NCBI GenBank assembly: GCA_964252035.1 | Contig: OZ176200.1 | From: Podarcis erhardii | Lineage: Eukaryota | Direction: 5' to 3' (one strand) | DNA length: 64,000 nt | Shown here: piece after piece, positions 707 to 62,733 of the stretch | How the letters are laid out: every line of letters starts with the position of its first letter | Numbering within the stretch: position 1 is the stretch's first letter | Notes under the pieces: model-generated | The model's database searches: none | What the model was told of the DNA's origin: nothing | What the model saw: only the letters and a program-made list of their open reading frames with translations | Program-made: the position numbers and the translations under genes

Positions 707-21290
<20,584 letters not shown>

Positions 21291-23155: not shown

Positions 23156-26100
23156 TCAGTCGTCGTCCTGTTGCAGCTGCTGGTGCCTGCTCTGGTACCA
23201 CAACATGGTGGGGAGGTTCTGGCAGCCTTGGTAGCGGCGCTGGCGCTCCTCTTCCCCCAGGGGTGGCACAGAGTGGCAGGGTGCCCCTGCTAATGAGACG
23301 TTGAGCAGCTGGGCTGGGGTGCCCGAGCCAAAGACTGCAGACCATGGACCCACCTGCAAGGAACAAGAGAGAATGCTTCACTTAAGTTTGCCCTGGGCCA
23401 CAACTCAATCTGTCATCAGCATTAATGTTTATATAGCACTTCCAACACATCAGTGTTTCAGGTACATTATCTTAGACAATTGGCCTGTAAGGATGGCCAG
23501 TAAAGCAAACTGAATTAAGGCTGCCTGGCTGGCTTCCACGTGCTCTAAAAAATGGTTAAGTTTCAGTGACTTCCTTTAGTTTGTTGCATCCAACCCTGTG
23601 CTATCACTTGGAATTAACCAATTTAGCCTGGATCCATTTCACTTGATTAAAAAATCAGTTCAAACTACCTTGAATGTACACTCCTTTTCCTTTTAATGGC
23701 AATGGTCTGTTTTTGAGCAGTAAAACTAATTGGGTGGGATGTAATAAAACACACGTTTTTCTTTCCAAATGTGCCATATTGCACATCAAAAGACTCCTTT
23801 AGTGCAAGCTACCTTCCACGAACTTCAGGTGCCATTCTCTAATTGTCATCACAGATGGCCTGTGTGTCAGTTACATGAGCAAAGGTTGGCTCTGGCCATT
23901 TGCCAAGTTCTAGTTTTCAGCATCGCTGCCTCTACACCTAAGCATTTATTTCTCAGTCTGTTGTGCTGCCCAATTGATTCCCAACACTTTCCCTACGCAC
24001 AGAGGAGAAACCAAACTGGTTGCAAGATGGTGCATAAGATGGCTTGGCCTTACCAGGAGCTGTGATCTGCCCTGAACTTGCTGCACAGCACAGGCCAGTT
24101 TTCATCTATGTTAATTGGCTAAACACCAATGTCCCTACTCCCCTCTCCCCTCCCCTGGAACTGGGAGTAGAGCCCAGGGAGTGCTGCCACCCAGTTAGTG
24201 ATCCTGCCACTAGAAGCAGCCACTTTGAACTGGAGACACCTGTTGCTAATGCCACCTGCCAAAAGCAATTTGAGGATGGGCTTCCTAGTCACTATTTTGA
24301 GCCTCCTGGTATTTATGTCCAGAACAAACAAATGCATCCTTGCCATCTCTTGAGGGACCATAAATTGGTGGCAGAGCATATGCATGCAGAAGGTAGCAGG
24401 TTCGAAACCCGATGTCCCCAGTTAAAAGGACCTGACAGCAGGCAACATGAAAACTGAGAGCCACTGCCAGAGTAGACAACATTGGACAATTAGCCTGACT
24501 CCATATGTTCCTATGCTCTGCAAACACCACGCCTTGGACTCCGAACAATCACGGCCCACCTTCCTTCCATGGCACTTACCGGCAACAAATGCTGGAGGAG
24601 GCACTGGTCAGGCTGCAGTCCGGCCCAGAACTCGGCAAAAGCTGACCCACCGCTGGCGGTAGTGGTGGCAGTGGCGGTGGTGGTGCTACGTATGAGCACC
24701 ACGTTGGGATGGCGCCGTGATGCCCGCAGCTTCTTCGTCAGTGGCCCCGGATAGCTCTGGTCAAGGAAGAGGAGAACCCGGCGAGCGTTGCAGCTCTCCA
24801 AGTCTGCTAGCAGCTCCGAGATGGGGTACCGCTCCTTAGGATCTGCCTGTTGCAGGGAAGGGACAGCTCATCAGCACCTGCCCCTTGGTCACAGACACAC
24901 AAGCACACCCCTCCCCGCTCCACAGTTGGGAGATCAAGGGGATTCCACTGCCTGGGAGTTAAAAGGAGCGGATTAAATGGGGAAGAGCAAGACAGGGCGA
25001 GCACCCACTGCAAAGGCCGGTGTTGTTTTCTCCCTGCAGGCACACATGAAAGAGCTGGACGGCCCTTTGAAGGGAACAGAGGAGAGGAGAGGGCTGCAGC
25101 CTCCACCTGCAGTTCTGTCAGCATCTCTCCTTCCTCCAGTCGGGCTTCCCAGGACATGCTGGGACAGGTGGGATGACCTTCTCCTCCTCCTTCACCCCAC
25201 TGCCAAAAGTGGCTCACTTCACTTTCCATTTCCAGCCTAGGAAACCCCAAAGGAAACTTGGCAAATGGCCAAATGCAGGCCTTTGAGAAGGGCTGGTGCC
25301 GCTCTGTATGTGTGCACAAGCATCTTAGGCAGCCGCTCCGCATTTTCCTGCCCCAGTTGGGTTCACTTGGCACCCCGACTTCACTGCTCCCTGCAAGCAA
25401 TTGATATTGGCTTACCCCCATGTGATAAATGCATTGTATCGTTAGCATCCCCATTCCCTGCTTGGCTAGGCAGCTGACATTAGCATCAATAGCCAAGGTC
25501 CTTTTTTGGATGATCATGATGAAGTAGGATTCATTCATTTAACAAGATGCATATACCGCTTGACTGTTGTAAAACCTCCAAGCGGTTTTACTTGTAAGTT
25601 AACCTGCTGCTGCTGCTTACTTCATTCTGCACCAACCTGTAGCTTTTCCCAACAAGCAACATTCATCAGTGCTTGGCTGACCACTGGGCAGGTGGCCTGT
25701 GGCTGTGGCTATTGTCACGGAATCAAAAGTCTACCTTTTTAAAAGTGAGGAGCAGTGAAGAACACCATGACAGGTTTCCTATTGGATTTCTATGGGTCAG
25801 CATATGGCTGTCTCAATTCACCTGGAGACAATTCCTGGGCAGAGCCACAGACTCCTGGACAAAATAATATATTTAATAGCATTGCTCATGGGGACTAATT
25901 TAGACCATTTCCTCGATGTATTTCTTCCTCTCTTTCTTCCTCTGCCTAACTTACCTGGTGGGTTACTCCCCCCAATAAATTGGCAAGAGATGTGCCCCAA
26001 GAGATGATATCCCTGCTGTGAAATAAGCAGCACCACTTTGTAACTTGTGCGGTACTGTATTTATTGTGCCCCCACACGTTAATTCACCTATAGAGGTTGT

Positions 26101-27978
26101 GCACCAGAGGAGGGGTGGGAGGGGGAGAGGGAAGAGGCACATACCCTTCTCTCCTCCTACAGTGATGTCATACCTGGATCCATCATGCCACCCCACCATC
26201 CTCTGATAATGCACACCCCAGCCACCCTTAAGCTCTGGAGGGTTTTGGCTACACATGCAAAATTCCAGTAGGATTGGGTTGATATCAATAGTGGGGACAG
26301 AGGATGGGATAGAACCTTCCTCCTATCATAGCTAAGGCCAAAGGGCTAAAAAAACTGGACCATTCCCATCATACCTGAACAATGATGATAGATCAGCTTG
26401 GCTTGGCTATTTAAAAAAAAAATCCTCAAAAAACAAGAAAACAACAGCAGGTTCATTTTGTCTCCTATACCCTTTTGAAATGTGGCTCTTTTGGGGGAGG
26501 TGTTATTGGGTTATTGTACTTATTTTGATTTTATATATTGTGATCTTTTCTGTGAACCACCCTGAGACCTCCAGGTATAGGGTGGTATATAAATTCAATC
26601 AATCAGTCAATACAGAAATGGCTTGTGATGTTTCATAATGGGAGTAGAGAGACGAGTGCCTGGGACAGCCAATGTTGGCAGCTCCATGGACAAGTGCTGC
26701 TCTGCTCCTCTTAGACAGCCTCTCCCTCGCTTCCAGCCCTGACCCCCCACTTACAATGCCGTTACGGTTGGCATCCCAAAGCAGCATGGTGCCATCGCTG
26801 GCTGCTGGGCTGTTGAGGTAGAGCACCAGCGAGTCGGCGCAGTGGAGGCTCCTGCAGACCAGGGCCAGGTGGGAGCGAATGGCCAGCTTCTCGGTGGCTG
26901 GGTGCACGTCGCCCATCTCCACAGTCACTGTCCAGAAAAGAAGAGGGAGAGAGGGATCTGCTAATCCCATGTCCCAAAGTCCTGTCTCCTCCCTCCAACC
27001 CACTCCAGTCTCGTACACCAAAGCAGCAGTCTCCCCCACAGACCACCCAAAAATGATTGGTCTTGGCACACCACTTAATGTTTTTTTATGCCTGTTGTAC
27101 CAGTTGGAATACACCATGCTAGATGCTGCCTGATTTTTCAAGATGTATTCCGAGTCCTTATACGTGTTTTATTGTGTTCTGTCGATTCAAATTGTAATGT
27201 AATAAAACACAAGGAAAGAAAAATGAAGAAGCATGAAAATTCAATTGACTATTTAATGTGAACTACCTGAAAGAAGCTTGACCACAGTTTGGGAACATCT
27301 TCCCCGTGGCATCCTCATTCCTCTTACTGCCACTTGCTCCCTGCCACCACATCCTGCTCATCTGGGAAGGGGCCAGAGTTGGGAGCAGCATGGGAATATT
27401 TGCTAGGCTCCCTCATTAGCCCACTCTGCAAAATGCCCCACAGGTGGTTTGGTCCACACCGTGCAGGCCTGTAATTTTTGCAGGGACATGTAACCCAAAG
27501 GTGAGATTTCACCAGGGCTAGATGCATTCACACCCAGCCTTTTCTCAAGTGGGATGGACAAGTAGGGTGACACTCTGAAATGCAATACACACAGCCCCCA
27601 TTCAGAACCTTGGTGGCAGGGAGAAGGAAGTGCCAGGAACAGAGTCTTGCCCCTGAAGAGCAGCTCATGGCATCCAGACACCCCTGAGTAGGGCTGGAGG
27701 GATATATTGATATATCATCCAAAACCGGTTTCTGGCCACATGGTAATAACTGTTTCAAAATCAATGACNNNNNNNNNNNNNNNNNNNNNNNNNNNNNNNN
27801 NNNNNNNNNNNNNNNNNNNNNNNNNNNNNNNNNNNNNNNNNNNNNNNNNNNNNNNNNNNNNNNNNNNNNNNNNNNNNNNNNNNNNNNNNNNNNNNNNNNN
27901 NNNNNNNNNNNNNAAAATCAGGAAACCACCCAGTGCTTCTGTGTCTCCCTGAGTTGAATGAGAAGGTACTCTTCCCTC

Positions 27979-28039
<61 letters not shown>

Positions 28040-31000
28040 CCTGTGTCTGCACCTGGAAGCAGCCAGCAGAAAGCACAGTTTTGTGAAGCTAGCTGATGCT
28101 GAAATTTAAGGAAGTACCTCCAGCTCGCTTGAGCAGGAGCGGCATGGGGACTTGCTCAGCTGTAGGGCCGGGTGAAGTATCTCGACTGCTTCTTTCTCCC
28201 CTCCTTATCTCTTCCTTCCTCCTTATTTTAGACATCATGATATATCAGTCTATCACAATATTTAGCTGGCGATATATCACAATGTTGAAAACCAAGTTAT
28301 CGCCCAGCCCTACCTATGGGCACTGACAAGTCACCCACCCCCCTAAGGAAACCAAGAGGCCTGTCCCACCCTTGCAGCCGACAGCTAGCTCTCTTTCATG
28401 CTGGTACCTGAGGCCTGCCCCTCACTCGCGAAGAAGGCCTTGATGTGCTCTTGGCGGAAGCCGTTCCGTCGAAGCATCTGGTAGAAGAGCAGCAGGTTCT
28501 GCGCATGGCGGGGGTAGGTGACCTGCTCCTGCCAGCCACCTGGGGGAGAAGCACAGTAAGCAATCCAGGGGGGAAAATGTGGTGAAGGAGAGGCTGGAGC
28601 TGGTTGCAAGGAGCATAGGAGCACTAACACTGCCCCTCAAGGAGACAAGGGGCCCGTTAAGCTCATGCCCAGTAGAACAAAGCTGTAGCTCAGTAACAGA
28701 GCATGTACTTGCACACAGAAAGAGCCAGGTTCAATCCTCGGCATCTCCAGATAAGGTTGGGCATGTCCGCTGTCTGAAACCTTGGAGAGCCACTGCCAAT
28801 CAGAGTGGCCAATACTCAGCTAGGTGGACCAATGGGCTAACGCAGCACAAGGCTGAGCCTCCAATCAGATTCACCCTCATCCATCTGCTGGCCAAATGCA
28901 ATGGCTTGCAGTGGTGTGCGGTCAGTGGACTGGGGGACTAGGCTAGTTCCCTAAATGTCCCCACTAAATTAGAATATTGAAGTATTAAAGCCTGGCACTT
29001 CCTTCCCAAAGCCCAGGAAGCTTCTGCCCGGCTTAGGGAGGGAGGCGTGATGTTCTCTCTCACACAATGCCGCCCCCTCCCGCAATCGCCCTCACAAGCT
29101 GGTGCCTCTGGCCCTAACTGTTACCCTAGGAAAAAATTCACCTCACACCGCTGATGGCTTCAGATTCCCAGGACCAGCAGATCCTTGCAGCCCCCAAGCA
29201 CCACTTCTCACCTGCAATCAGCACAGCATGGTCACATGTCTGGTACATGCGGCAAGACTTGTACAGCGGAAGCTGCTGCCTGTGGCATCGCCGTGTGTTC
29301 TTGTTGAGTTCACAGTAAGCGGCTGTGGAGCTGGAGCTCGCAAGGGGCAGGGGCTCCGGGCAGGGGCTGTATCCACGGAGATCTGGGAAAGAAAAGGAAG
29401 TGTAGCAGGAAGGCAGGAGGGGAAAGAACCTCAGGCCCATGGAGCAGACCCCAACAGACCCTTGAACTGTCATGGGGGCCCCTTGACAGTTCCACCCCAC
29501 TGCCCGTCCAATCCAGGGACTTACCCACACAGTTCAGCCTTTGCAGGTGTTTGGGGTCCTGTGCCACCACTACCATAGGCAGGAAATGGATCTCACAGAG
29601 ACCAACGGGGGGCTCCTCGCGGCGGATGCGTCCTGCAGACCGCTGGCTCCTTCCCTTGCCACGGCCCGGTCGGCGCTTCAGCTGGTTCTCACAGCGGCTC
29701 CTCTGGGCTGGAATCAAGCATTCATAGCCGCCTGCGGGCAAAGAACAAACATGTCTGGAATAAAACCTGCTGAGAAAGTTCCCTATACAGGGCTGCCTTC
29801 AGGTGTCTTCTAAAAATCAGATTGTTGTTTATTTCATTGACATCGTTCCACAGGGCAGGTGCAACTACTGAGAAGGCCCTCTGCCTGGTTCCCTGTAGCT
29901 TTGCTTCTTGCAATGAGGGAACCGTCAGAAGGCCCTTGGTGTTGGACCTCAGTGTCTGGGTTGAATGATGGGGGTGGAGACGCTCCTTTAGGTATACTGG
30001 GCCGTGGCTGTTTAGGGCTTTAAAGGTCAGCATCAACACTTCAAATTGTGCTCAGAAATGTACCAGGAGCTAATGGAGGTCTTTCAGGACCAGTGTTATA
30101 TGGCCCAGTGGCTGCTCCCAGTCACCAATCTGGCAGCCGCATACTGGATTAGTTGTAGTTTCCCATTCACCTTCAAAGGTAGCCCCACGCAGAATACATT
30201 GCCGTAGTCCAAGTGGGAGATAACCAGAGCATGCACCACTCTGGCGAGACAGTGACAGGCAGGCAGGGTCTCAGCTGGCATACCAGATGGAGCTGGTAGA
30301 AAGCTGCCCTGGACACAGAATAATATATTATTATATATACATTAATATTATTTTATTTTAGTGCATGGTTTAATTTTCTTGATTTTCTTAATTTCTCCAT
30401 GGAACAAGCAGAGTTCAAAAAGGTTCCAACAGATTATTAGATTCTGTGGAACAGGTGATGGGAATGAATCTTTGCTTCAGTTGTGATTGGTGAGCAGCTT
30501 ATAGAGCATTCATGTGCAACACCCTCAACCCTGTGAAAAGACCAGAGAAAATATACATCTTCTTTTTCTTTATTTTGTCTTATTATATACTGTTTATGAC
30601 CATTTGTCTCCTGGTTTGCTGGGGGTTCACAATATTTTTTGCATTCTTGTTTGTATATATTATCTAAAACTTCAGTAAAAATATTAAAACAACAAGCCAT
30701 AATCACTTGTGCATACTACATCTCTACTGTAAACTCTGCAGAACCAAGTCAGAATCTTGTCTCCCCAAGCAGAATAAAAGAGGATTTCCTCCTAGAGGTG
30801 TAAAGTATGGGGTATAAAACTCCCTCCAAAAATGGAGAGGATAAGAAAGGAGTTGGTTGTCAGTTAGGCTGCAATGCTTGGCCAATTAATTCACAAGGCT
30901 GATGGATTAAAACACATTTCTGATAGGCTAAAAAAAGGTGATTAATCACACTAAAAAAAAAGTTAATCATTTTAATATAATGAAGGTTAATTATTTTTAA

Positions 31001-33851
31001 AAGAAAGAAGATGCATTTCTCCTCTGTTGTCTCAGCCACATGAGTGAAAATGTCTTCTAATATGGGACTTGCAATATACAGTAATATGCATAAATATATT
31101 TATTTTTAATGATGATTTCCCCCCTTTCAGAATTTTTTTATTTCCTCATTTACATAGAACAAATCAATTAATTAACTAAACATGTCCAACACACACTACT
31201 ATGTCTACTCAGAAGCAAATCCTATGGAATTCAATGGAGTTTACTCCCAGGTGAGACAGTTTAGGATTAGAGAAACAATCCTACTTTTCAACATCAGCAA
31301 GAAAGACTAATGTGAAGGAAACGCTCCCTGGGCTTAGATAAACTGTCTGTTGTTTTCAGTGCCTAAGAGCAAGGAATTCTCCTTGCACAATGTAATGCTT
31401 TCTCCCTCTCCTCCCCTTTGCACACCCCCTAAATCTGTTCTGGGTGTTCCCCTCAACCCTCTGGATCAGATTCGGGGAGGGAATCCTATTGCACTAGCAC
31501 AAGTATTTGGCTGATTCCCGCCTGTCACATATCTTATATCACAGATTCTGGGATTCCTGTGTTCAAAGGGCTAAACCCTGATTCATACTAAGCCCTGAAA
31601 GACACCCTGAGTATTAGCCCATCAGTGACAGTCATGCCGGAGAGATTCCACCCAACTGAGCCTCCCACCTGTCACCCTTTGCACTGCAGCACCTTCTAAC
31701 TTTCCTCTACCAGACTCTTCCGCTGATGCCACCTCTGCCTTGAGATTACAGAAGCTCACTAGACTCCAGAGAGCCCCTCAAGGCTGTAGGGATGGAGTTT
31801 TCCCCAGCGCATCCCAGGATCAGGAGGGAACTGGAGATGCCCCTCCAGCAGTAGATCCTCTCTCTTGGCTATCCCAAATTCTCCAAGTAACCCCTGCAGG
31901 CTGGTCTCAGGATGCCACTGCATACAGGACTGACACAAACACTGAGCTAGGGACAGCTTCACACACAACTCGCTGATGGAAAGAAGACACTGTTGGAGCC
32001 TTGAAAGTCCCAACTGCACTTGCCAATAGCAGTTATAAAAGCATGTGTGTGGAAGGCAGAGGAGATGAGAACAGGAGCATATGTGAAAGGAGGATGCTGG
32101 AGAAGCCAGGCAGCCTTCCTTCCAGATTTCACTGGCTCATAAGATCAGAGGGAACCCAAAGACCAGTCCGTAGTAAGCAGGTGCTCCTCACATCTCACAC
32201 CAAACCCCCTACCCTGCTTTTAGCTCCTACCATGGAAATCAGTGTCTGGCAAAGAAGAAGAGCCAGGATTACTGCAGAGCAGGCAACTAAATCCCTCAAG
32301 CAACTGAGACAAGTCACAAGGTGGAGACCCCAAATCACTCCTCAGTCTTATCTGGGAGGACATCATCTTGCAACCCCAAACATTGCTCCTACACAGCGGA
32401 ATGTCTCTCCCTCTGCCATACCTGAAGTATCATCCATCAGTTGATATTCTTGAAAAGGCGCATCTTTTGGCTCAAGTGTTTCCTGAATCCCTGATTCTAT
32501 AATGACGGTTTTCCTGCGTTGCTGTTTCTTAATGTTCTATCTGTTTTTAGGATACTGTCTAATTTTCTTTTTTTTGTGGATTTCTGTACACTGTTTAGAG
32601 GTTTTTTTAATATTAAGCAGCCTATAAATGCTTTCAATCAATCAATCAAATATAAAAACTGCTTTTAATTAATTCCAGATTAGCCCATCCTCAGTGGAAA
32701 CTTTATTGGACAGTTTATCTCCCGCCCAACATTCTCTTCCCTGACTTTTAAGATACTGGGGCAAAGGGCACTCTGCCCCAAGCGATGCTGAATAAGAAGC
32801 TACAAAATATCTGAAGAGGTGATCCAGTGCGTGAGGAAGAACACCAGGAGGAGGATTAAGGTGCATAAACACAGTCAGTAATTTTCGTGAGAAAAGAATG
32901 TCCCGAGGATAAGGCGGGTCACAGGGTGCAGCAGTTGGGATACTGAATCTTGGGGAAGGGAAGGGTAGGCGCAAGTGCCTGTTTTGTAAACCAGAGGGGC
33001 ACTGGGCCTCAGATATGACTATATCTCATATCTAACCGCTGTACGTTTATTTTAAACCACCTTCTTTTATGCCGGGTCATCTGATGTGGACGCCTTTACA
33101 GAGCAGAGCAGATGCTGGGGGCGGTTCTGCATATGCGTTCTGCATATGCTTAGGATCAGGCTCCTCTATAGGATTGCTCCTTGTAGTTTAGGGTTGAAAT
33201 GCGGGCAGATCTGAGCACAAATGCCAGATCTGATCTGGGTCCTGGCACCATGGAACGGGAGGAAATAGGAAGCCTGGAATGGGACGGGCGCAAGCCAATA
33301 TGTTCTCTGCTGGGAGTGGTCGTCCACGGGGCGCGCGTGGCCTGAGGATGCGGCATTCACTTACCCACGTAGAGGCTGTCGCGGCTCCGGCACCGGCGCG
33401 GGCTCACGTTGAAGTCGACATAGAAGAGCAGGAGCGGGTGGCCGAAGTTGGCGCCCGGGGTGGGGTCCAGCACGAGGATGGCGTCTTGCGCGGAGGGCGC
33501 GCCGGTGGGGCGCAGCGGGCTGCCGCTCTGGTTGCGGCCGGCCACGAAGGGCGGAGCGCCGGGTCTGTCTCCCCAGCCGTCGGGCAGCAGCGCCCGCACC
33601 TTGTGGCCCGGGCGGGCGGGCTCGGAGACATAGACGGCGGGCCCCGGCCCCTGGGAAAGGCGCGCCAGGCGCTGGCACTGCGGCCGCGGCAAGAGCCCGC
33701 CGCGCTCGGGACACTGCGCCGCCGCCACGTGCCGAAGCGCCGCCGCCGCCCAGCGCGCCACCCGCGCCTCGGAGAAGCGGTTCCCCGACGGGGCGGCCGC
33801 GCACGGCCAAGCGAGGGATGCAGCGGCCAGCGCCAACAGCAGCGGGGCCAT
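23156..33851 (-). CDS. Uncharacterised secreted legumain/peptidase-C13-like (caspase-hemoglobinase fold) protein, probable pseudo-peptidase; 7 exons, 544 aa
   Basis: Minus-strand exons: 33851-33365, 29731-29525, 29382-29212, 28539-28408, 26927-26755, 24846-24580, 23353-23156. Each has a polypyrimidine-AG acceptor and a GT donor, phases 1,1,1,1,0,0 join into 1635 nt with no internal stop. N-terminal signal peptide MAPLLLALAAASLAWPCAAA. HAVLIAGGWQEQVTYPRHAQNLLLFYQMLRRNGFRQEHIKAFF resembles legumain [53 protein letters not shown] and RVLLFLDQSYPG resemble the two catalytic strands DHVFIYFTDHG and KMVFYIEACESG. Exon 1 lies in a CpG island. The gene model is well supported; the fold assignment is by eye. 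The exon-4 donor could instead be at 28426 (same phase). Confidence 0.88.
24362..24513 (+). mobile_element. tRNA-derived SINE (Squam3-like), diverged
   Basis: GGCAGAGCATATGCATGCAGAAGGTAGCAGGTTCGAAACCC..GAGAGCCACTGCCAGAGTAGACAAC..CTGACTC..TTCCTATG. Confidence 0.65.
27769..27913. other. Assembly gap (145 N) in intron 4 of the C13-like gene
   Basis: Run of N. Confidence 1.
27982..28040. repeat. (CT)n(GT)n compound microsatellite
   Basis: Direct reading. Confidence 0.9.
28681..28854 (+). mobile_element. tRNA-derived SINE (Squam3-like)
   Basis: A-box GCTGTAGCTCAGT, B-box GGTTCAATCC, body CTGAAACCTTGGAGAGCCACTGCC..GGACCAATGG. Related copies at 24362-24513 (+), 44700-44830 (-) and a head at 49632-49657 (-). 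Confidence 0.75.
29775..30318 (-). mobile_element. L2 LINE fragment (RT C-terminus) in intron 1 of the C13-like gene
   Basis: Minus-strand ORFs VHALVISHLDYGN..GLPLK..KLQLIQYAAARLVTG and LTFKALN..GP.YLKERL..QRAFSVVAPALWN..FRRHLKAAL are characteristic of L2 ORF2 ends. Confidence 0.9.
31190..31275. repeat. Old interspersed palindromic reptile repeat
   Basis: ATGTCTACTCAGAAGCAAATCCTATGGAATTCAATGGAGTTTACTCCCAGGTGAG; related to 35050-35110 (GTTTACTCGGAAGTAAGTCCCACTG) and 56545-56580. Confidence 0.5.
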
Positions 33852-40181: not shown

Positions 40182-43100
40182 TCAGGACAGACAGCAGTTG
40201 GAGGGCTTTGTGCTTCGAGCCTAGGAGGACACAAATATGCTGAGGGTAAGAACAGCCAGAGAGGGCAGCACATCCTTCCCTCCCTGCCCAACAAGACCGG
40301 ACTGGCCATTTTCTACCAGAAGAATCTTACACCACCCCACATGCACAAAGCACACTGTTTTACATTCTATGATTATATATAAAATGATGATGGTGGGCAT
40401 TATTCTCTCTCTTGTTTTAAGCTGTGAAATCACGTTGTCTAAAACAAATAAACCAAACTTGTATGGATATATTTATTAATGATATTATTTCTAATATATA
40501 TATTAAATGGTTATACTTAATTGTTCACTTGATATTTTGTGAACCGCTTTGGGCACCGTTTTGAGGGCAAGTGGCGTAAATGCAAGCGGATGACGAAAAT
40601 ATATTGCAAGGAGAGAGGGAAAGGGCAATTGTTCTGTAATCCCAATTTGCAAACAGGACTGGTGGTCAAGGGTTAGATTTAAATCTATGTGAAAAAATCT
40701 GCAGTGCACGTCTGCCTGACCCTTTGGGATACCTGCTTCTCCCCAAGCTGGGCAGTGTAGTTAGTTAACCTACTCCTCCCTGCAACTAAAAGCATTTACC
40801 AAACCTAGCAGCATCCAGCCTCCAGAGTTCCATATACAATAAAAGATGATAAGAAAAGATCCGAAAGGCAGCTGATCTGATTTGGGTTCTAGTTGGTTGG
40901 TTTGGCTTTAGACTTCCTTGATGAGATTGTCCTCTTTTACTCACAAGGAAGTAGACTGGCAGAGTCTATGTGCAGGAGGAGGATCAGAAGCGACTTTGTG
41001 AGAATCGCCTCATCTTGCTCACCTGTTGCTGCTGCTGCTGCCGCCGGTATTCCTCCTCGCTGGCCGACAGGGCCCGAGCCAGTGCAAGGTCTTCCTCTTC
41101 CTGGGCGCTGTTTGAGACACAGGACTGGATGAGTCAGACATGCTGCACAAATTAGAATCTGTACCCCCCAGCAATTTCCTGGCACATTCCTCCCAAGATA
41201 GGGAGTGATTTATTTTAACAAGAACTTGCATTCCATTTAAATAATAAAAACCTCCAAGCAGAGGTCAGTATGTTGGTGTGCATATAGTGATCTCACCACA
41301 TTTAGATCTGTATTTAATGCTTTGAGGGCCTAAGCAGCACAGACGTCCATGCTCTGCCTCCACAGTTGCAGGCAGTAATGCTTCTCAATACCACTTACTG
41401 GAAACCACAGGAGGAGAGTGGGGTCAAGCTCAGGTCCTGCTTGCTGGTTTCCCACAGGCACCTGCTGGATTAGATGGGCTATTGGCCTGATCCAGCAGGC
41501 TCTCCTTACACTCAGAGGACTGGAATTGATGTCAACAGTCCTCTGGGCACATGAATGTTAACACAGCCTCCCCCCATCCAACTCCATTCTCTGCCAGAGA
41601 GTCTCCCATATATGCAGATTCCAAGCAGGTAGCCTGGCACAGTGGCGCCAGTAAGATCTTGAAGCCAGCTGATCTCTGCAGGGCTGGCGCAACCGTGCTG
41701 TACCTGCGGGCTTGTGGTTGGGTGGGCACTGCCTCCGCTAGGGACATCTCCAAGGCTCGCTGCAGCGCTTCCTCCTCACTCTGAAACACAAAAGCAGATT
41801 CAGCCTGCTGTGGAGGAGGCTAACAGCCTCAGCAACTTGCAGCTTATAGGTACAGGGCAAAGCATATGCCAAGACCAAACTAAGCTTCCTGATGTATATT
41901 GTACCCTACGAGGTATAGTTTGGTCAGAATTCAGTATACACTTCCAAGTGAACACTAAAAACATTACTTCTGGTAAATGAGCCACCATAGCCCCTAGAGG
42001 GCCATGACTCATCTACCCATCTACTATCAAACCAAAGGGACACATTGGTTGCAAGGTGTGAATTTTCTTTCAGCTCTTCTACCCCACTGTGGAGGTTTTC
42101 ACTAGAGGGAGTTTGGGTGAGGGGAAAGGATTTTTTACCAGCTTTCCCCTTTCCCCTGCAGTCACCAGTACTGTCTTTCCAACCCTCTGGAGCAGACTTT
42201 CTCGAGGCCTAGGGAAAAGGAAGAACTGCAGAAAATCACCTCCCCCACTTCTGACCTTGGGTGCATCCAGTTAGCAGAGTGCCACAGGGGACAAATCTGG
42301 ACCCAGCCCACCCTGTCCCACCACAGCGACCACTCACAGATGCAGATTAAACAAAGGACATGAAGCGATATGTCCACTTGTAAGCTGAGACGAGGCTTAC
42401 CAGGGAAGGCACCCACAAGATAATACATTATTTCTCTCTCTGTTTCCTGACTTCTGGGGTTTCATTTGTAATTCGGCTTAAGATTTTTGTTCTCACTTTT
42501 GAAGCTCTTACTTATTTGCCTCTCCTCCTGATCTGTCTTTGGTTCCCCACTGGATTCCATTCTGAATACTTATCCACGACTCTTCTCCTTGTTACACCCA
42601 GGATTTCTTGTCCCAACTACCACCATCCTTTTTCTCAGGCTTCTTTTTAACACTAGAATGTTTTTTCCTGCAAATATTCATGGTTTGTTGTTTCTTTACA
42701 AATAATAATTTCTTAAAATGCATTTCACCCTTTTCTGCCTGTCAGCTCCAACCCACCCTGCATTTGGGTCCTTTTAAACCTATTTGATTTCTAATATTTC
42801 TAGGTTTATATTCAGGGGGAAAACCCNNNNNNNNNNNNNNNNNNNNNNNNNNNNNNNNNNNNNNNNNNNNNNNNNNNNNNNNNNNNNNNNNNNNNNNNNN
42901 NNNNNNNNNNNNNNNNNNNNNNNNNNNNNNNNNNNNNNNNNNNNNNNNNNNNNNNNNNNNNNNNNNNNNCAAATTCAATGAGGATTTAGGATTGCAGTCT
43001 TAAAACTGTTTTCAGATTACTGTCTTAAACCAGGAAACACACAACTTTGTATTTCTGTCTTATTCCCATTTTTTCCTGCTTAAGACTGCAAGCAGTTTTG

Positions 43101-59697: not shown

Positions 59698-59922
59698 ATA
59701 ATAATATACGTCCTTTGTATGCTGTAATCTGGTCTTTTTCTCAGCCTTGATGGCACTGTCTTTCATTAGTCATCTTACCAACGACAGCAGAGATTGACTG
59801 GAGTGCTTCCTTTGGGCCTCGTAAAGTTCACATGTGTGTTTCTTTCAGGCTGGTCATGGTGAAGATGCCGCTCTGACTCCGGTTCACCAGCTGGACTCAA
59901 TGAGAGTGTGGGATGGCTCTAC

Positions 59923-62733
59923 ATGGCCTCTGTAGGGCCAGAAGCCTATAGCCTTGGCCTCAAGAGGGGAAACCAGTTCCAGGTGGGCATTGCACCAGGG
60001 CTGACGGTGCCGCCACTCACAGCAAAGCTTCACGAGAGTAAGGCCTGGTACCTTGCTAAGCAGCAGGTGAAGCCCATTTGGCAGCTGGAACAGAAGCATG
60101 TGACCAATTTTCAGGACCTCCAATCGGTCCACTCAGGGATTTCTTCCCAGCGTCCCCGCCTCTTGTACCCAGAGTCATTATGTAGTGATACAGCATTCCT
60201 GACTTCACCTCCACCTTTGCCCCACGCTCTCCCAAACTTCCTCGGAAGCACCTTGCTCTACCGACGTTCTTACTTCAGACACAAGCCTTATCGGAGGCTT
60301 GAGTCCATCTGTTTGCAGCCAACTTCTTTGGAGAAGAAACCTCTTTGTGCTCCGCTCCCTACCTATCGCTCCGTTCTCAACAACACCATGACATCCTCAG
60401 CCATAGACCCATTCTTTATGCCGAATACTGCTGCTGACTGTTCCAATCCAGTGTCAAAGGGGTTCCCCCTAAGCTCAGGGAAGCAAAACTCCAATTCATA
60501 CAGGCCAGTGCTAAACAATAACTCTTTCCTTCGGCCAACTAGTGCAAAAGTGCCTTTGCAGCAGCAGTACCACCAACCGCTGCCACCAGAAAATAAGAAG
60601 CTAAAAGGCTTGTCAAGACCTATTGGCTTCTCTTGGACCCACTCTGGTGGAAATGGAGATGGTGCTCCTGTGAACCTTGAAAGAAAGCTTGGGAAAAACA
60701 GTGGCATAGCTCTTGAGCAACCCAGTGCCAAATCTCCTCGCTCGGCCATTCACAATGGCGTGGTTCTCAAAGTGGAACGGCCCTCCTGGCGACTCGAAGA
60801 TGGTGAGAACAGGTCTCAGAACCTGAAAGAGCAAGATGTGCGGTTGACGGAAGCTATGCGGAAGCTGACTGCAAATGGCATCCGGAAGGTTAGCACCTAC
60901 AACGAATTTGGTCACCGCATTGACAGCTCTTGCCTTATGAATGCAAACTTCCACTCCAGTCTTTTCAATCGATGGAAGCCACACATAGTAGCACAGATCA
61001 CCCCAAAGGACGTACCAGCTGCCACCTCCCCAAATCTGGAGCCTGGTAGCCGCCACCAGAGCCTTATGGTCACAGAAGCTGCCGATGTCTGCACTAAACG
61101 CATCGATGTTCGTTTCTTAGCCTCAAATCCTGAACCTTCCAACCACTGCGCCTTGAGTCAGACTGTCAACCACACCTCTGTAAACGCTGGAGAACAAGTG
61201 GTAAAAACAGAGCTGTCCCCACGGACTACAGTCTCTGAGGTAGAGACCAAAATTTCCTCTCTTCAGTTAGGCACGGATACAAAATGGGGGAACCCTGTTA
61301 CTGTGAAAGAGACCGAGTAAGTACTCTGGCAAATATGTCTGTTGGGGTGGGTTAGTGTTTCCCTTTCAGTACTCTTTGTGGCAATAATTGCCAACCTGTA
61401 GCCCTCCAAGTGTTGCTGGATTACACTTCCCACAATCCCTGAATCATTGACCATGCTGTCTGTCGGGCTGGGCGATATCAGCTTTTCAACAGTGCGGTAT
61501 ATCATCAGCCAAACATCGCGGTCTGGTGATATACCGTATTGTTGAAAAAACAAGCTGTATTGGCCTCAGCCAGTGAGATCCCAGGTGAAACTGCCACATC
61601 TCTCACTGAGGCGGTTTCACCCTAGTGCCTAGCGGGCTAGGACAACACAGCTTGTTTGCATGGCTCAGCTGGGGCGCAGGAAGGCTCCCAATCCCCAGCA
61701 GTGCCCCCCCCACTTGTGTGGGAGCCAGCACTGGGCTGGGGGATCCTTTAACTGCTCAGCTGAGCAGAGCAGCAACCACACATGCCTCAGCCGAGCAGTT
61801 CAAAGATGCAGAGGGAGGAAAAAGTTGTATCAACACCTTGCCAATGAAGCTTGTTTCTCCCTCTGCACAATATGAGGGCAGAGTGGGATGGCGGTTTCAC
61901 TCCGCAGTATATCACTGGTGAAACCGCTGCTTCTCCTGAGTCCCTCTGCTGGCAGCGTCTGCTGGAAGGAGTCAAGAGTCTTGACTTCCTCCAGCGAGAG
62001 ATACTAGCAGAGGGACTCGGGAGCGATGGTAGTTACACCAGTGATATACCGCTGAGTGAAGCCTGTGTGGTCTGCTCCTCATACTGGCCCTGGGCGATAT
62101 ATTGATATGTCGCTCAGGCCTAGCTGACTGGGGCTGATGGGTGTGGGAGTCCAACAGCATCTGGAGGTTAATCACCCTTTTCTTATGATAAGGACTATGT
62201 TTGATATAGTAGAATATGCTAAAGAACTTACTAGCAAAGTGTTCCTATGATGTAAGCATATTTAAGCTTGGTCATCAATCGGCGTTTGATACGCCTTGGA
62301 TGGTTTTGCAGCCTTCACTGTCTCCAAAACGTCTCTCAAATCAGATGACAATTCTGCTTTACTTCCGGTAGCCCGTTGTTTTGACAAGTGTGCCACAAGT
62401 CAAGTCCAAAATTTGCCACTTGAACTATTCCTCCCTTTCTCTCCACACCACTTCTATCACTAACATGGGTTAATGTTTATGATAGTTATTTGGGATATCT
62501 TGCCTTGTCTGTGATCTCTTGGTCTGTTGTTGGGTGTAGAGATCTTTTTGCTTTGCTAACTGAGAGGAGTTACAGAGCTTCACTTTAGGGCTGTAACCCT
62601 TTGTGTTGTAGAGCTGCAGTCAACCTCCCCCTGCTGGACCAAGCGGAGGTGGAAGATGTAGAGGAAGAGCTCCCGGACGGCTTGGAAGATGCCTGCAGTC
62701 AGGATGAGGAGGGCGAAGAGGAGGATGGGGAAG
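59923..62733 (+). CDS. TTLL4: Tubulin monoglutamylase TTLL4; 3'-partial, first two coding exons
   Basis: Large exon 59849-61316 (acceptor tctttcag, ATG 59923, donor GA/gtaagt) and exon 62612-62733. Motifs MASVGPEAYSLGLK, QQVKPIWQLE, TLLYRRS..KPY..LES.CL, YRPVLNNNSF, RLTEAMRKLTA and DQAEVEDVEEELPDGLEDAC match the TTLL4 N-terminus. The catalytic TTL domain lies downstream of the window. Confidence 0.93.
61463..62122. mobile_element. Non-autonomous hAT element (about 660 bp) nested in an older palindromic MITE
   Basis: Ends TCGGGCTGGGCGATAT / ATATGTCGCTCAGGCCTA; near-perfect TSD GCTGTCTG / GCTGACTG. A shorter relative ends TATCGCCCAGCCCTA at 28163-28312. Confidence 0.75.

Follow-up and report, generated by a model that had tools for sequence, protein, structure and literature searches.

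The window considered here is a stretch of 64,000 nucleotides from Podarcis erhardii (GenBank assembly GCA_964252035.1, contig OZ176200.1), and its minus strand carries an intact gene for a protein with a legumain-like C-terminal domain. Legumain (LGMN) belongs to family C13 of MEROPS; in the protein encoded here, the catalytic His and Cys of such enzymes appear as Pro and Ser. A first-pass annotation of the window had proposed a pseudo-protease of this kind, and the alignments described below indicate that the gene belongs to a conserved pseudo-protease family and is neither a broken gene nor the product of a chance motif.

A seven-exon gene and its transcripts

The gene was rebuilt from open reading frames, splice signals, and phase compatibility. 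All introns of the resulting minus-strand model are GT-AG, and its seven exons give an uninterrupted coding sequence of 1635 nucleotides for 544 amino acids. Two runs of N are present in the window (27769-27913 and 42827-42969), the first of them within the gene. The features are as follows.

33365..33851, minus strand: exon 1, with start codon 33851-33849; putative signal peptide, then the beginning of the N-terminal domain; phase 1 end at donor GTAAGT
29525..29731, minus strand: exon 2, remaining N-terminal domain; basic low-confidence linker (LKRR ... RIRREE); conserved CEIHFLP strand
29212..29382, minus strand: exon 3, cysteine-rich linker (CELNKNTRRCH ... YQTCDH); strand beta-1 (HAVLIAG) of the C13-like domain
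28408..28539, minus strand: exon 4, GWQEQVTYPRH, helix alpha-1, strand beta-2; R299 at 28510-28508, H300 at 28507-28505
27769..27913: assembly gap of 145 N in the intron that separates exons 4 and 5 (intron 4), with no coding sequence
26755..26927, minus strand: exon 5, helix, strand beta-3 (LVLYLN), N371-S372-P373, D377-G378 hairpin, start of the LWDxNxNG loop
24580..24846, minus strand: exon 6, end of the Ca2+-loop-like motif (ADPKE), helix, beta-4 with D419-Q420-S421-Y422, helix, beta-5, variable Thr/Ala-rich loop
23156..23353, minus strand: exon 7, conserved C-terminal tail (LLNVSLAGAPC ... GCQNLPTMLW); stop codon 23158-23156

Exon 1 is 84-88% identical to lizard orthologues, and exon 2, which forms the top-scoring exon pair by phase and splice signals, agrees with the orthologues P0003 (an NCBI protein of Hemicordylus capensis) and P0008 (Elgaria). 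The region 24754-28510, to which the first-pass annotation had drawn attention, corresponds to exons 4-6. Read on the minus strand, the codons CGC-CAT (R-H) lie at 28510-28505 inside T-Y-P-R-H, CCA (P373) at 26808-26806 inside L-N-S-P-A, and AGC (S421) at 24756-24754 inside L-D-Q-S-Y-P-G. Each of these motifs is thus found where that annotation had placed it, and the spliced model reproduces its numbering (R299, H300, P373, S421) and the spacing of 48 that it had given.

The gene is transcribed in related species, exon 6 included. Transcript evidence comes from three public runs of related organisms (X1, X2, and X4, used as Logan contigs), which belong to two studies. In all three runs, spliced contigs are joined at 26927 to 28408, 24845 to 26754, and 23351 to 24578, and the CT..AC ends of these joints read as GT..AG on the minus strand; a single contig of 2636 nucleotides covers exons 4, 5, 6, and 7. 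The contigs also confirm the exon 5/6 junction, which runs through a Ca2+-like loop. An alternative in-frame donor at 28426 is ruled out, every spliced contig using 28408. Isoform X2 of Hemicordylus capensis (P0003) skips exon 6 (267 nucleotides, in frame), removing beta-4 and with it Ser421; all three contigs keep this exon.

The run of N between exons 4 and 5, together with the annotated Hemicordylus isoform that has no exon 6, could be taken to mean that the copy in the window is decaying or mis-assembled, that the gap conceals an exon or a break in the frame, and that the motifs are relics. However, the frame is open for 544 amino acids with canonical splice sites, the contigs from the three runs join exons 4 to 7 at exactly the predicted borders, and the protein is 89% identical over 540 amino acids to the full-length Elgaria protein P0008. 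Exon 4 ends in phase 1, contributing one codon base, and exon 5 supplies the other two, so that the join is in frame. In P0003, the exon 4 sequence (ASEGQAS) is followed immediately by that of exon 5, and extra residues at this join are absent from every one of the 114 orthologues aligned, which range from sharks to squamates (0/114). Since the spliced contigs also skip the gap, it hides no exon, and decay or mis-assembly is left with a practically negligible probability.

The gene sits between an ABC transporter gene and a gene containing a ubiquitin-interaction motif (UIM). The transporter exons, which match ABC_membrane and ABC_tran, occupy the plus strand from about 6.7 to 21.3 kb (~6750-21290); the last of them encodes an acidic Glu/Gly-rich tail and ends near 21290, so that this gene and the C13-like gene are convergent. 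The UIM (22.6 bits) lies in a minus-strand exon at 41535-41819. Within intron 1 of the C13-like gene, a minus-strand open frame at 29725-30051 encodes a repeat-like protein sequence; it is similar to a repeat that is widespread in squamate genomes and is presumably a piece of a transposable element. Contigs pile up at 26412-26600 in a repeat-like manner, and a plus-strand open frame of 485 codons at 59863-61317 has no Pfam match.

Distribution of the family and its relation to C13 peptidases

Word-based searches identify the gene as the orthologue of zebrafish si:ch211-67e16.11. Teleost orthologues carry this name, those of squamates and turtles are annotated 'uncharacterized protein LOC…', and further orthologues are found in gar, bowfin, lungfish, sharks, and rays. 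Identity to the sharks and teleosts is about 52%, against the 89% seen with Elgaria. None of the orthologues found has a precomputed Pfam domain, and direct Pfam scans of full-length members added none. A search for the zebrafish symbol in the literature collection covered found no paper mentioning it, and searches on legumain pseudo-proteases gave nothing on this animal C13-type family.

A family profile built from 104 orthologues, when searched against 1.84 billion representative proteins, gave 575 matches at E<=1e-3. Cluster look-ups place the deeper matches both in deuterostomes, namely sea urchins (Diadema), a hemichordate (Ptychodera), amphioxus, and tunicates (Styela, Clavelina), and in protostomes, namely molluscs (Liolophura, Lymnaea, Octopus), Artemia, hemipteran insects (Cimex, Rhodnius), Trichuris, and Trichinella. 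By these matches the family is bilaterian-wide, every member being unnamed, and the first-pass framing of the protein as a vertebrate C13 protein was too narrow. Mammals, birds, and amphibians are not represented among the 120 orthologue matches listed by the word-based search, although the family is not thereby shown to be missing from them.

The fold was addressed with an AlphaFold2 model built on P0008 with a 104-sequence alignment. Its mean predicted local distance difference test score (pLDDT) is 71.6 and its predicted template-modelling score 0.69; across the C-terminal domain (residues 281-500), pLDDT ranges from 63 to 91 per 10-residue block. Strands and helices alternate along this domain (beta 287-292, alpha 302-317, beta 325-329, alpha 350-362, beta 369-374, beta 417-422, alpha 427-436, beta 443-448). 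In a Foldseek search of the PDB, the top 50 matches are all clan CD proteins, with PIGK (7wld_K, E 1.5e-5) at the head, human legumain (7fql_E, E 2.7e-5) next, and caspases, metacaspases, and MALT1 after them. Alignment with VIA-align pairs model residues 283-502 with residues 26-282 of a human legumain chain (5lua_A; Z 16.3, root-mean-square deviation 3.1 A, 198 residues) and gives Z scores of 16.1 for PIGK, about 14.6 for caspase-6, and 17.1, the top score, for metacaspase 4 (6w8r_A). In the ESM Atlas, clusters of PF01650 (Peptidase_C13) come out closest among the named families, whether language-model features or structures are compared. These three comparisons bear out the legumain- or C13-type domain of the first-pass annotation, and the model indicates that the C-terminal domain has the caspase/haemoglobinase fold; its homology to peptidase family C13 is seen in the profile matches that follow.

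Because Pfam is silent on the animal members, membership of C13 has to be argued from the fold together with transitive profile matches. Only Trichuris P0148 reaches 17.5 bits for PF01650, under the cut-off of 22.8. In the search of 1.84 billion proteins, the family profile also matched three bacterial-type proteins, P0234, P0268, and P0272, at E values of 3e-26 to 1e-21. Scored against PF01650 these have 17.9, 24.5, and 28.1 bits, respectively, so that P0234 falls below the cut-off, and all three also carry FlgD_ig and Por_Secre_tail domains. When the C-domain profile was broadened and compared with PDB sequences, weak matches (E ~0.05) appeared, 11 of the 16 being plant legumains or asparaginyl ligases.

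It could still be argued that the likeness reflects a shared Rossmann-like alpha/beta fold and nothing else, that the protein is unrelated to proteases, and that the mapping of P373 and S421 described below is coincidental. No animal member has a direct Pfam C13 match, the family profile finds no PDB sequence, and identity to legumain is just 12-17% in structural alignments. However, matches at E 1e-21 to 3e-26 reach proteins above the Pfam C13 threshold, and with one of these the H-G and D-Q-C of the enzyme are aligned to S-P and D-Q-S at 31% identity over 187 columns. Furthermore, the leading structural matches are drawn from clan CD throughout, with Z scores of 14.5-17, and the plant legumains and asparaginyl ligases among the weak PDB matches align RH on RH. 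A purely shared fold is thus very improbable.

Among the relatives in clan CD, PIGK/GPI8, the C13 catalytic subunit of the glycosylphosphatidylinositol (GPI) transamidase, is the best Foldseek match. It keeps its His/Cys dyad and is a subunit of a membrane complex of the endoplasmic reticulum, whereas the window protein lacks the dyad and has no predicted membrane anchor. The local motifs flanking the His and Cys strands may most resemble those of PIGK. The metacaspases (C14B), which are Ca2+-dependent members of clan CD, give the top structural score and invite comparison with the Ca2+-loop-like motif of this family; however, no link to C14 is seen at the level of sequence, where the family is tied to C13.

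The catalytic positions and the old active-site face

The catalytic triad of legumain is Cys189-His148-Asn42; throughout the active proteases of clan CD, the His and Cys are strictly conserved (PMC9604545). Where these residues would fall in the present family was tested by sequence alignment. In the alignment to the family hidden Markov model, P0234, P0268, and P0272 read L-Y-T-S-N-H-G-A and D-Q-C-[FY]-S-G, and the corresponding sequences of the animal proteins are L-Y-L-N-S-P-A-A and D-Q-S-Y-P-G. An hhalign comparison of the family with P0272 (probability 98.7%, E 2.9e-16, 31% identity over 187 columns) puts the Ser on the Cys unambiguously and displaces the His by one position through an insertion and a deletion. 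In all cases, both the His and the Pro stand at +4 from a conserved strand Tyr; P373 therefore occupies the position of the catalytic His, and S421 that of the catalytic Cys. The assignment of His to Pro373 and Cys to Ser421 in the first-pass annotation is thus confirmed through homologues that keep H-G and D-Q-C at these sites. The pair H361/C362 is ruled out as a substitute dyad by topology, since it precedes beta-3 and lies at the sheet edge opposite the active-site face; C362 and C357, both of them invariant, are more likely to be paired in a disulphide.

Conservation was judged in 115 jawed-vertebrate sequences, consisting of 114 orthologues and the window model, and constraint was read from invariance at the protein level. 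P373 is present in all 115, S372 in 114, and N371 in 113. D377, G378, and H283 are each found in 115, and H300 in 114. Residue 419 is Asp or Glu in every sequence, Q420 is present in 114/114, S421 in 113/114 with one Thr, and Y422 in 113. The invariance or near-invariance of NSP and DQSY that the first-pass annotation had asked about is therefore upheld, and because these motifs are constant to this degree across the orthologues, they are not chance. Overall, 80 positions out of 544 reach an identity of 99% or more. The most conserved residues of the C-terminal domain sit at the C-terminal ends of beta-1, beta-3, and beta-4 (GGW...H300; NSP..DG; DQSY), which together make up the ancestral active-site face, and a second cluster of positions at or above 99% forms the loop L-W-D384-x-N386-x-x-G389-x5-E395. 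Among 27 distant homologues that do not have the dyad, Pro is found in 23 and Ser in 19; the remaining 8 have Thr, Asn, Ala, Gly, or Ile at the Ser column, and Cys never occurs there. Taken together, the alignments indicate that the Pro/Ser replacement of the catalytic dyad is fixed in jawed vertebrates and predominant across Bilateria.

The family can be compared with the enzymes feature by feature. Like legumain, it consists of putative secretory-pathway proteins and has the caspase/haemoglobinase fold, the 'AVLIAG' sequence in beta-1, an R-H at the start of alpha-1, a turn at the His position preceded by a hydrophobic strand, and another hydrophobic strand that carries an acidic residue at Cys-2. 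Unlike legumain, it has Pro for His148, Ser for Cys189, and Ala or Thr for the Gly that follows the His; the spacing of the two positions is 48 rather than 41, a D-x-N-x-N-G loop is present, and there is no direct Pfam match. Nor do the orthologues match the legumain prodomain (PF20985), the window protein having instead an N-terminal domain of about 230 amino acids and a different C-terminal tail. The closest dyad-bearing relatives, P0234, P0268, and P0272, have in common with the family GGW, an LWD-x-[ND]-x-[ND]-G loop whose position 12 is Glu, and D-Q-[C/S]-[YF]-S-G. However, they keep H-G and D-Q-C, have 'S-R-Y' in place of R/H-H, and are without the N-terminal domain of the animal proteins; the additional domains that they carry are bacterial secretion and Ig-like ones.

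Since the dyad is replaced by Pro and Ser, it follows that the protein cannot work as a cysteine peptidase, and it is soundly predicted to be proteolytically dead. The conserved residues have nevertheless to be weighed as parts of an active, non-canonical enzyme, in which Ser421 would act as the nucleophile, with His300 (or His283) and Asp/Glu419 activating it, possibly in a Ca2+-dependent manner; a Cys-independent, ligase-like activity would be a variant of this idea. Ser421, Gln420, Tyr422, His300, His283, and the acidic residue 419 have been near-invariant for more than 400 million years, beyond what a decaying site keeps, and the invariant residues lie on the canonical active-site face. 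On the other hand, the general-base His is Pro in 115/115 sequences and is followed by Thr or Ala rather than Gly. A nucleophile would also not tolerate the substitutions seen at the Ser column in 8 of the 27 distant dyad-less homologues, outside jawed vertebrates His300 is not conserved, and no Ser-based enzyme is known in clan CD. The ligase activity of legumain is a further point in favor of such a catalyst, as it needs no thioester on Cys189 (PMC9604545). On balance, an active enzyme of this kind is unlikely.

A separate question concerns the S1 pocket, which in legumain is made of Arg44, His45, Ser216, and Asp231, the last two on loop L5 (PMC4357240). The first-pass annotation held that the Arg-His pair of this pocket is kept. 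The His part of the claim stands, His300 being present in 114/115 sequences, and in the weak matches of the broadened profile the R-H of the family aligns with the N-Y-R-H of legumain. The Arg, in contrast, varies: position 299 is Arg in 63, His in 43, and Gln in 6 of the 115 sequences. Sharks, gar, bowfin, and lungfish have Arg there, and His is found in 4/4 turtles and 9/10 squamates, the window protein being the sole squamate with Arg; the RH pair is not retained in the 27 distant homologues from outside jawed vertebrates. The stretch after beta-5, which would hold the equivalents of Ser216 and Asp231, is Thr/Ala-rich, varies from species to species, and is partly deleted in teleosts. The Arg299 codon of the window, CGC (28510-28508), differs from the His of the 9 other squamates and the 4 turtles, which would amount to a single-base change at a CpG; Arg299 could be a lineage-specific reversion or an allele.

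Putative secretion features and a proposed binding role

Another feature is an EF-hand/DxDxDG-like loop, D-A-N-R-N-G-I-A-D-P-K-E (residues 384-395), which is built across the junction of exons 5 and 6 (24832-26775). Its D384, N386, G389, and E395 are at least 99% conserved, and position 8 is Ala, not the usual hydrophobic residue. The same D-x-N-x-N-G-x5-E pattern, with Glu at 12, is also found in the dyad-bearing bacterial-type C13 relatives. Ca2+ dependence is known within clan CD (PMC4357240).

Direct reading of the sequence suggests a signal peptide at the N-terminus and several conserved N-x-S/T sites. Residues 27-262 form a helix-plus-sheet domain of about 230 amino acids with a disordered, length-variable basic linker (pLDDT <50). 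This linker (residues ~177-205, exon 2) is bounded by conserved L-K-R-R and R-x-R-R-E motifs (R-I-R-R-E-E in the window protein), which look like a pair of proprotein convertase sites around a removable peptide. When the N-terminal domain (P0008 27-262) was folded alone, no significant relative was found, the best Foldseek match having an E of 0.18 and the best wide VIA score being Z 4.6; cystatins and NTF2-like proteins appear at Z 3.2-4.6 (cystatins at 3.2-4.5), which is below the quoted noise level of the tool. A cystatin-like module beside a legumain-like domain would be intriguing, if true, but these scores lie within the noise.

All of these features have led to the following proposal, for which the package as a whole has a probability of roughly 0.7. 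In this model, the gene encodes a secreted, probably Ca2+-binding homologue of the C13 peptidases that is not a cysteine peptidase and that uses the old active-site face for binding. The retained cleft, which keeps His300, an acidic residue at Cys-2 (D/E419), and often Arg299, would bind a peptide or protein ligand; Ca2+ would stabilise or regulate the protein via the D-x-N-x-N-G loop; and maturation may occur by cleavage at the conserved basic sites of the disordered linker. The binding role, taken by itself, stands at about even odds. Within it, the protein might serve as the decoy or cystatin sink that the first-pass annotation had suggested.

Several points weigh against this proposal. The argument from the S1 pocket is weak, R299 being variable and the loop L5 equivalents not being conserved, as judged by alignment. 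Ca2+ binding by the loop is probable, and what speaks for it is a motif match only. PF01650 gave no match for the window exons, nor for P0003, P0005, or P0008 (E<=10 or E<=1), and the full-length family profile gave 0 matches at E<=10 against PDB sequences. In addition, the strict conservation of Ser421, His300, and D/E419 would also fit a non-canonical Ser-based catalyst. In the most far-reaching form of this idea, the protein would be a catalyst without precedent on the clan CD/C13 scaffold, either Ser-based or nucleophile-independent and ligase-like, with D/E419-Q420-S421-Y422, N371-S372-P373, His300, and the Ca2+ loop serving to process or join secreted peptides; alternatively, it would be an extracellular receptor or regulator for Asn/Asp ligands or cystatin-type inhibitors. 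We regard this as quite doubtful.

The proposed secreted binding protein has counterparts among other clan CD pseudo-proteases. In the pseudo-caspase cFLIP and in the pseudo-orthocaspases, the fold is kept and conserved while the dyad is substituted, implying a non-proteolytic role. These are C14 proteins, however, and are intracellular or prokaryotic, whereas the present family would be secreted and C13-type, with a fixed Pro/Ser and an N-terminal domain of its own. The old active-site face is more constrained than any other surface even though the dyad is fixed as Pro/Ser, which would make this family a clean case of what becomes of a protease cleft after catalysis is lost.

Legumain and PIGK are the two C13 proteins usually attributed to vertebrates, and the family described here is a third, separate C13-type lineage. 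The lineage is old, given that it is found throughout Bilateria and that its nearest dyad-bearing relatives are bacterial-type C13 peptidases. Its absence from mammals, birds, and amphibians, if true, would provide an example of the lineage-specific loss of a conserved secreted protein. The existence of a zebrafish orthologue makes the function of this family directly testable.

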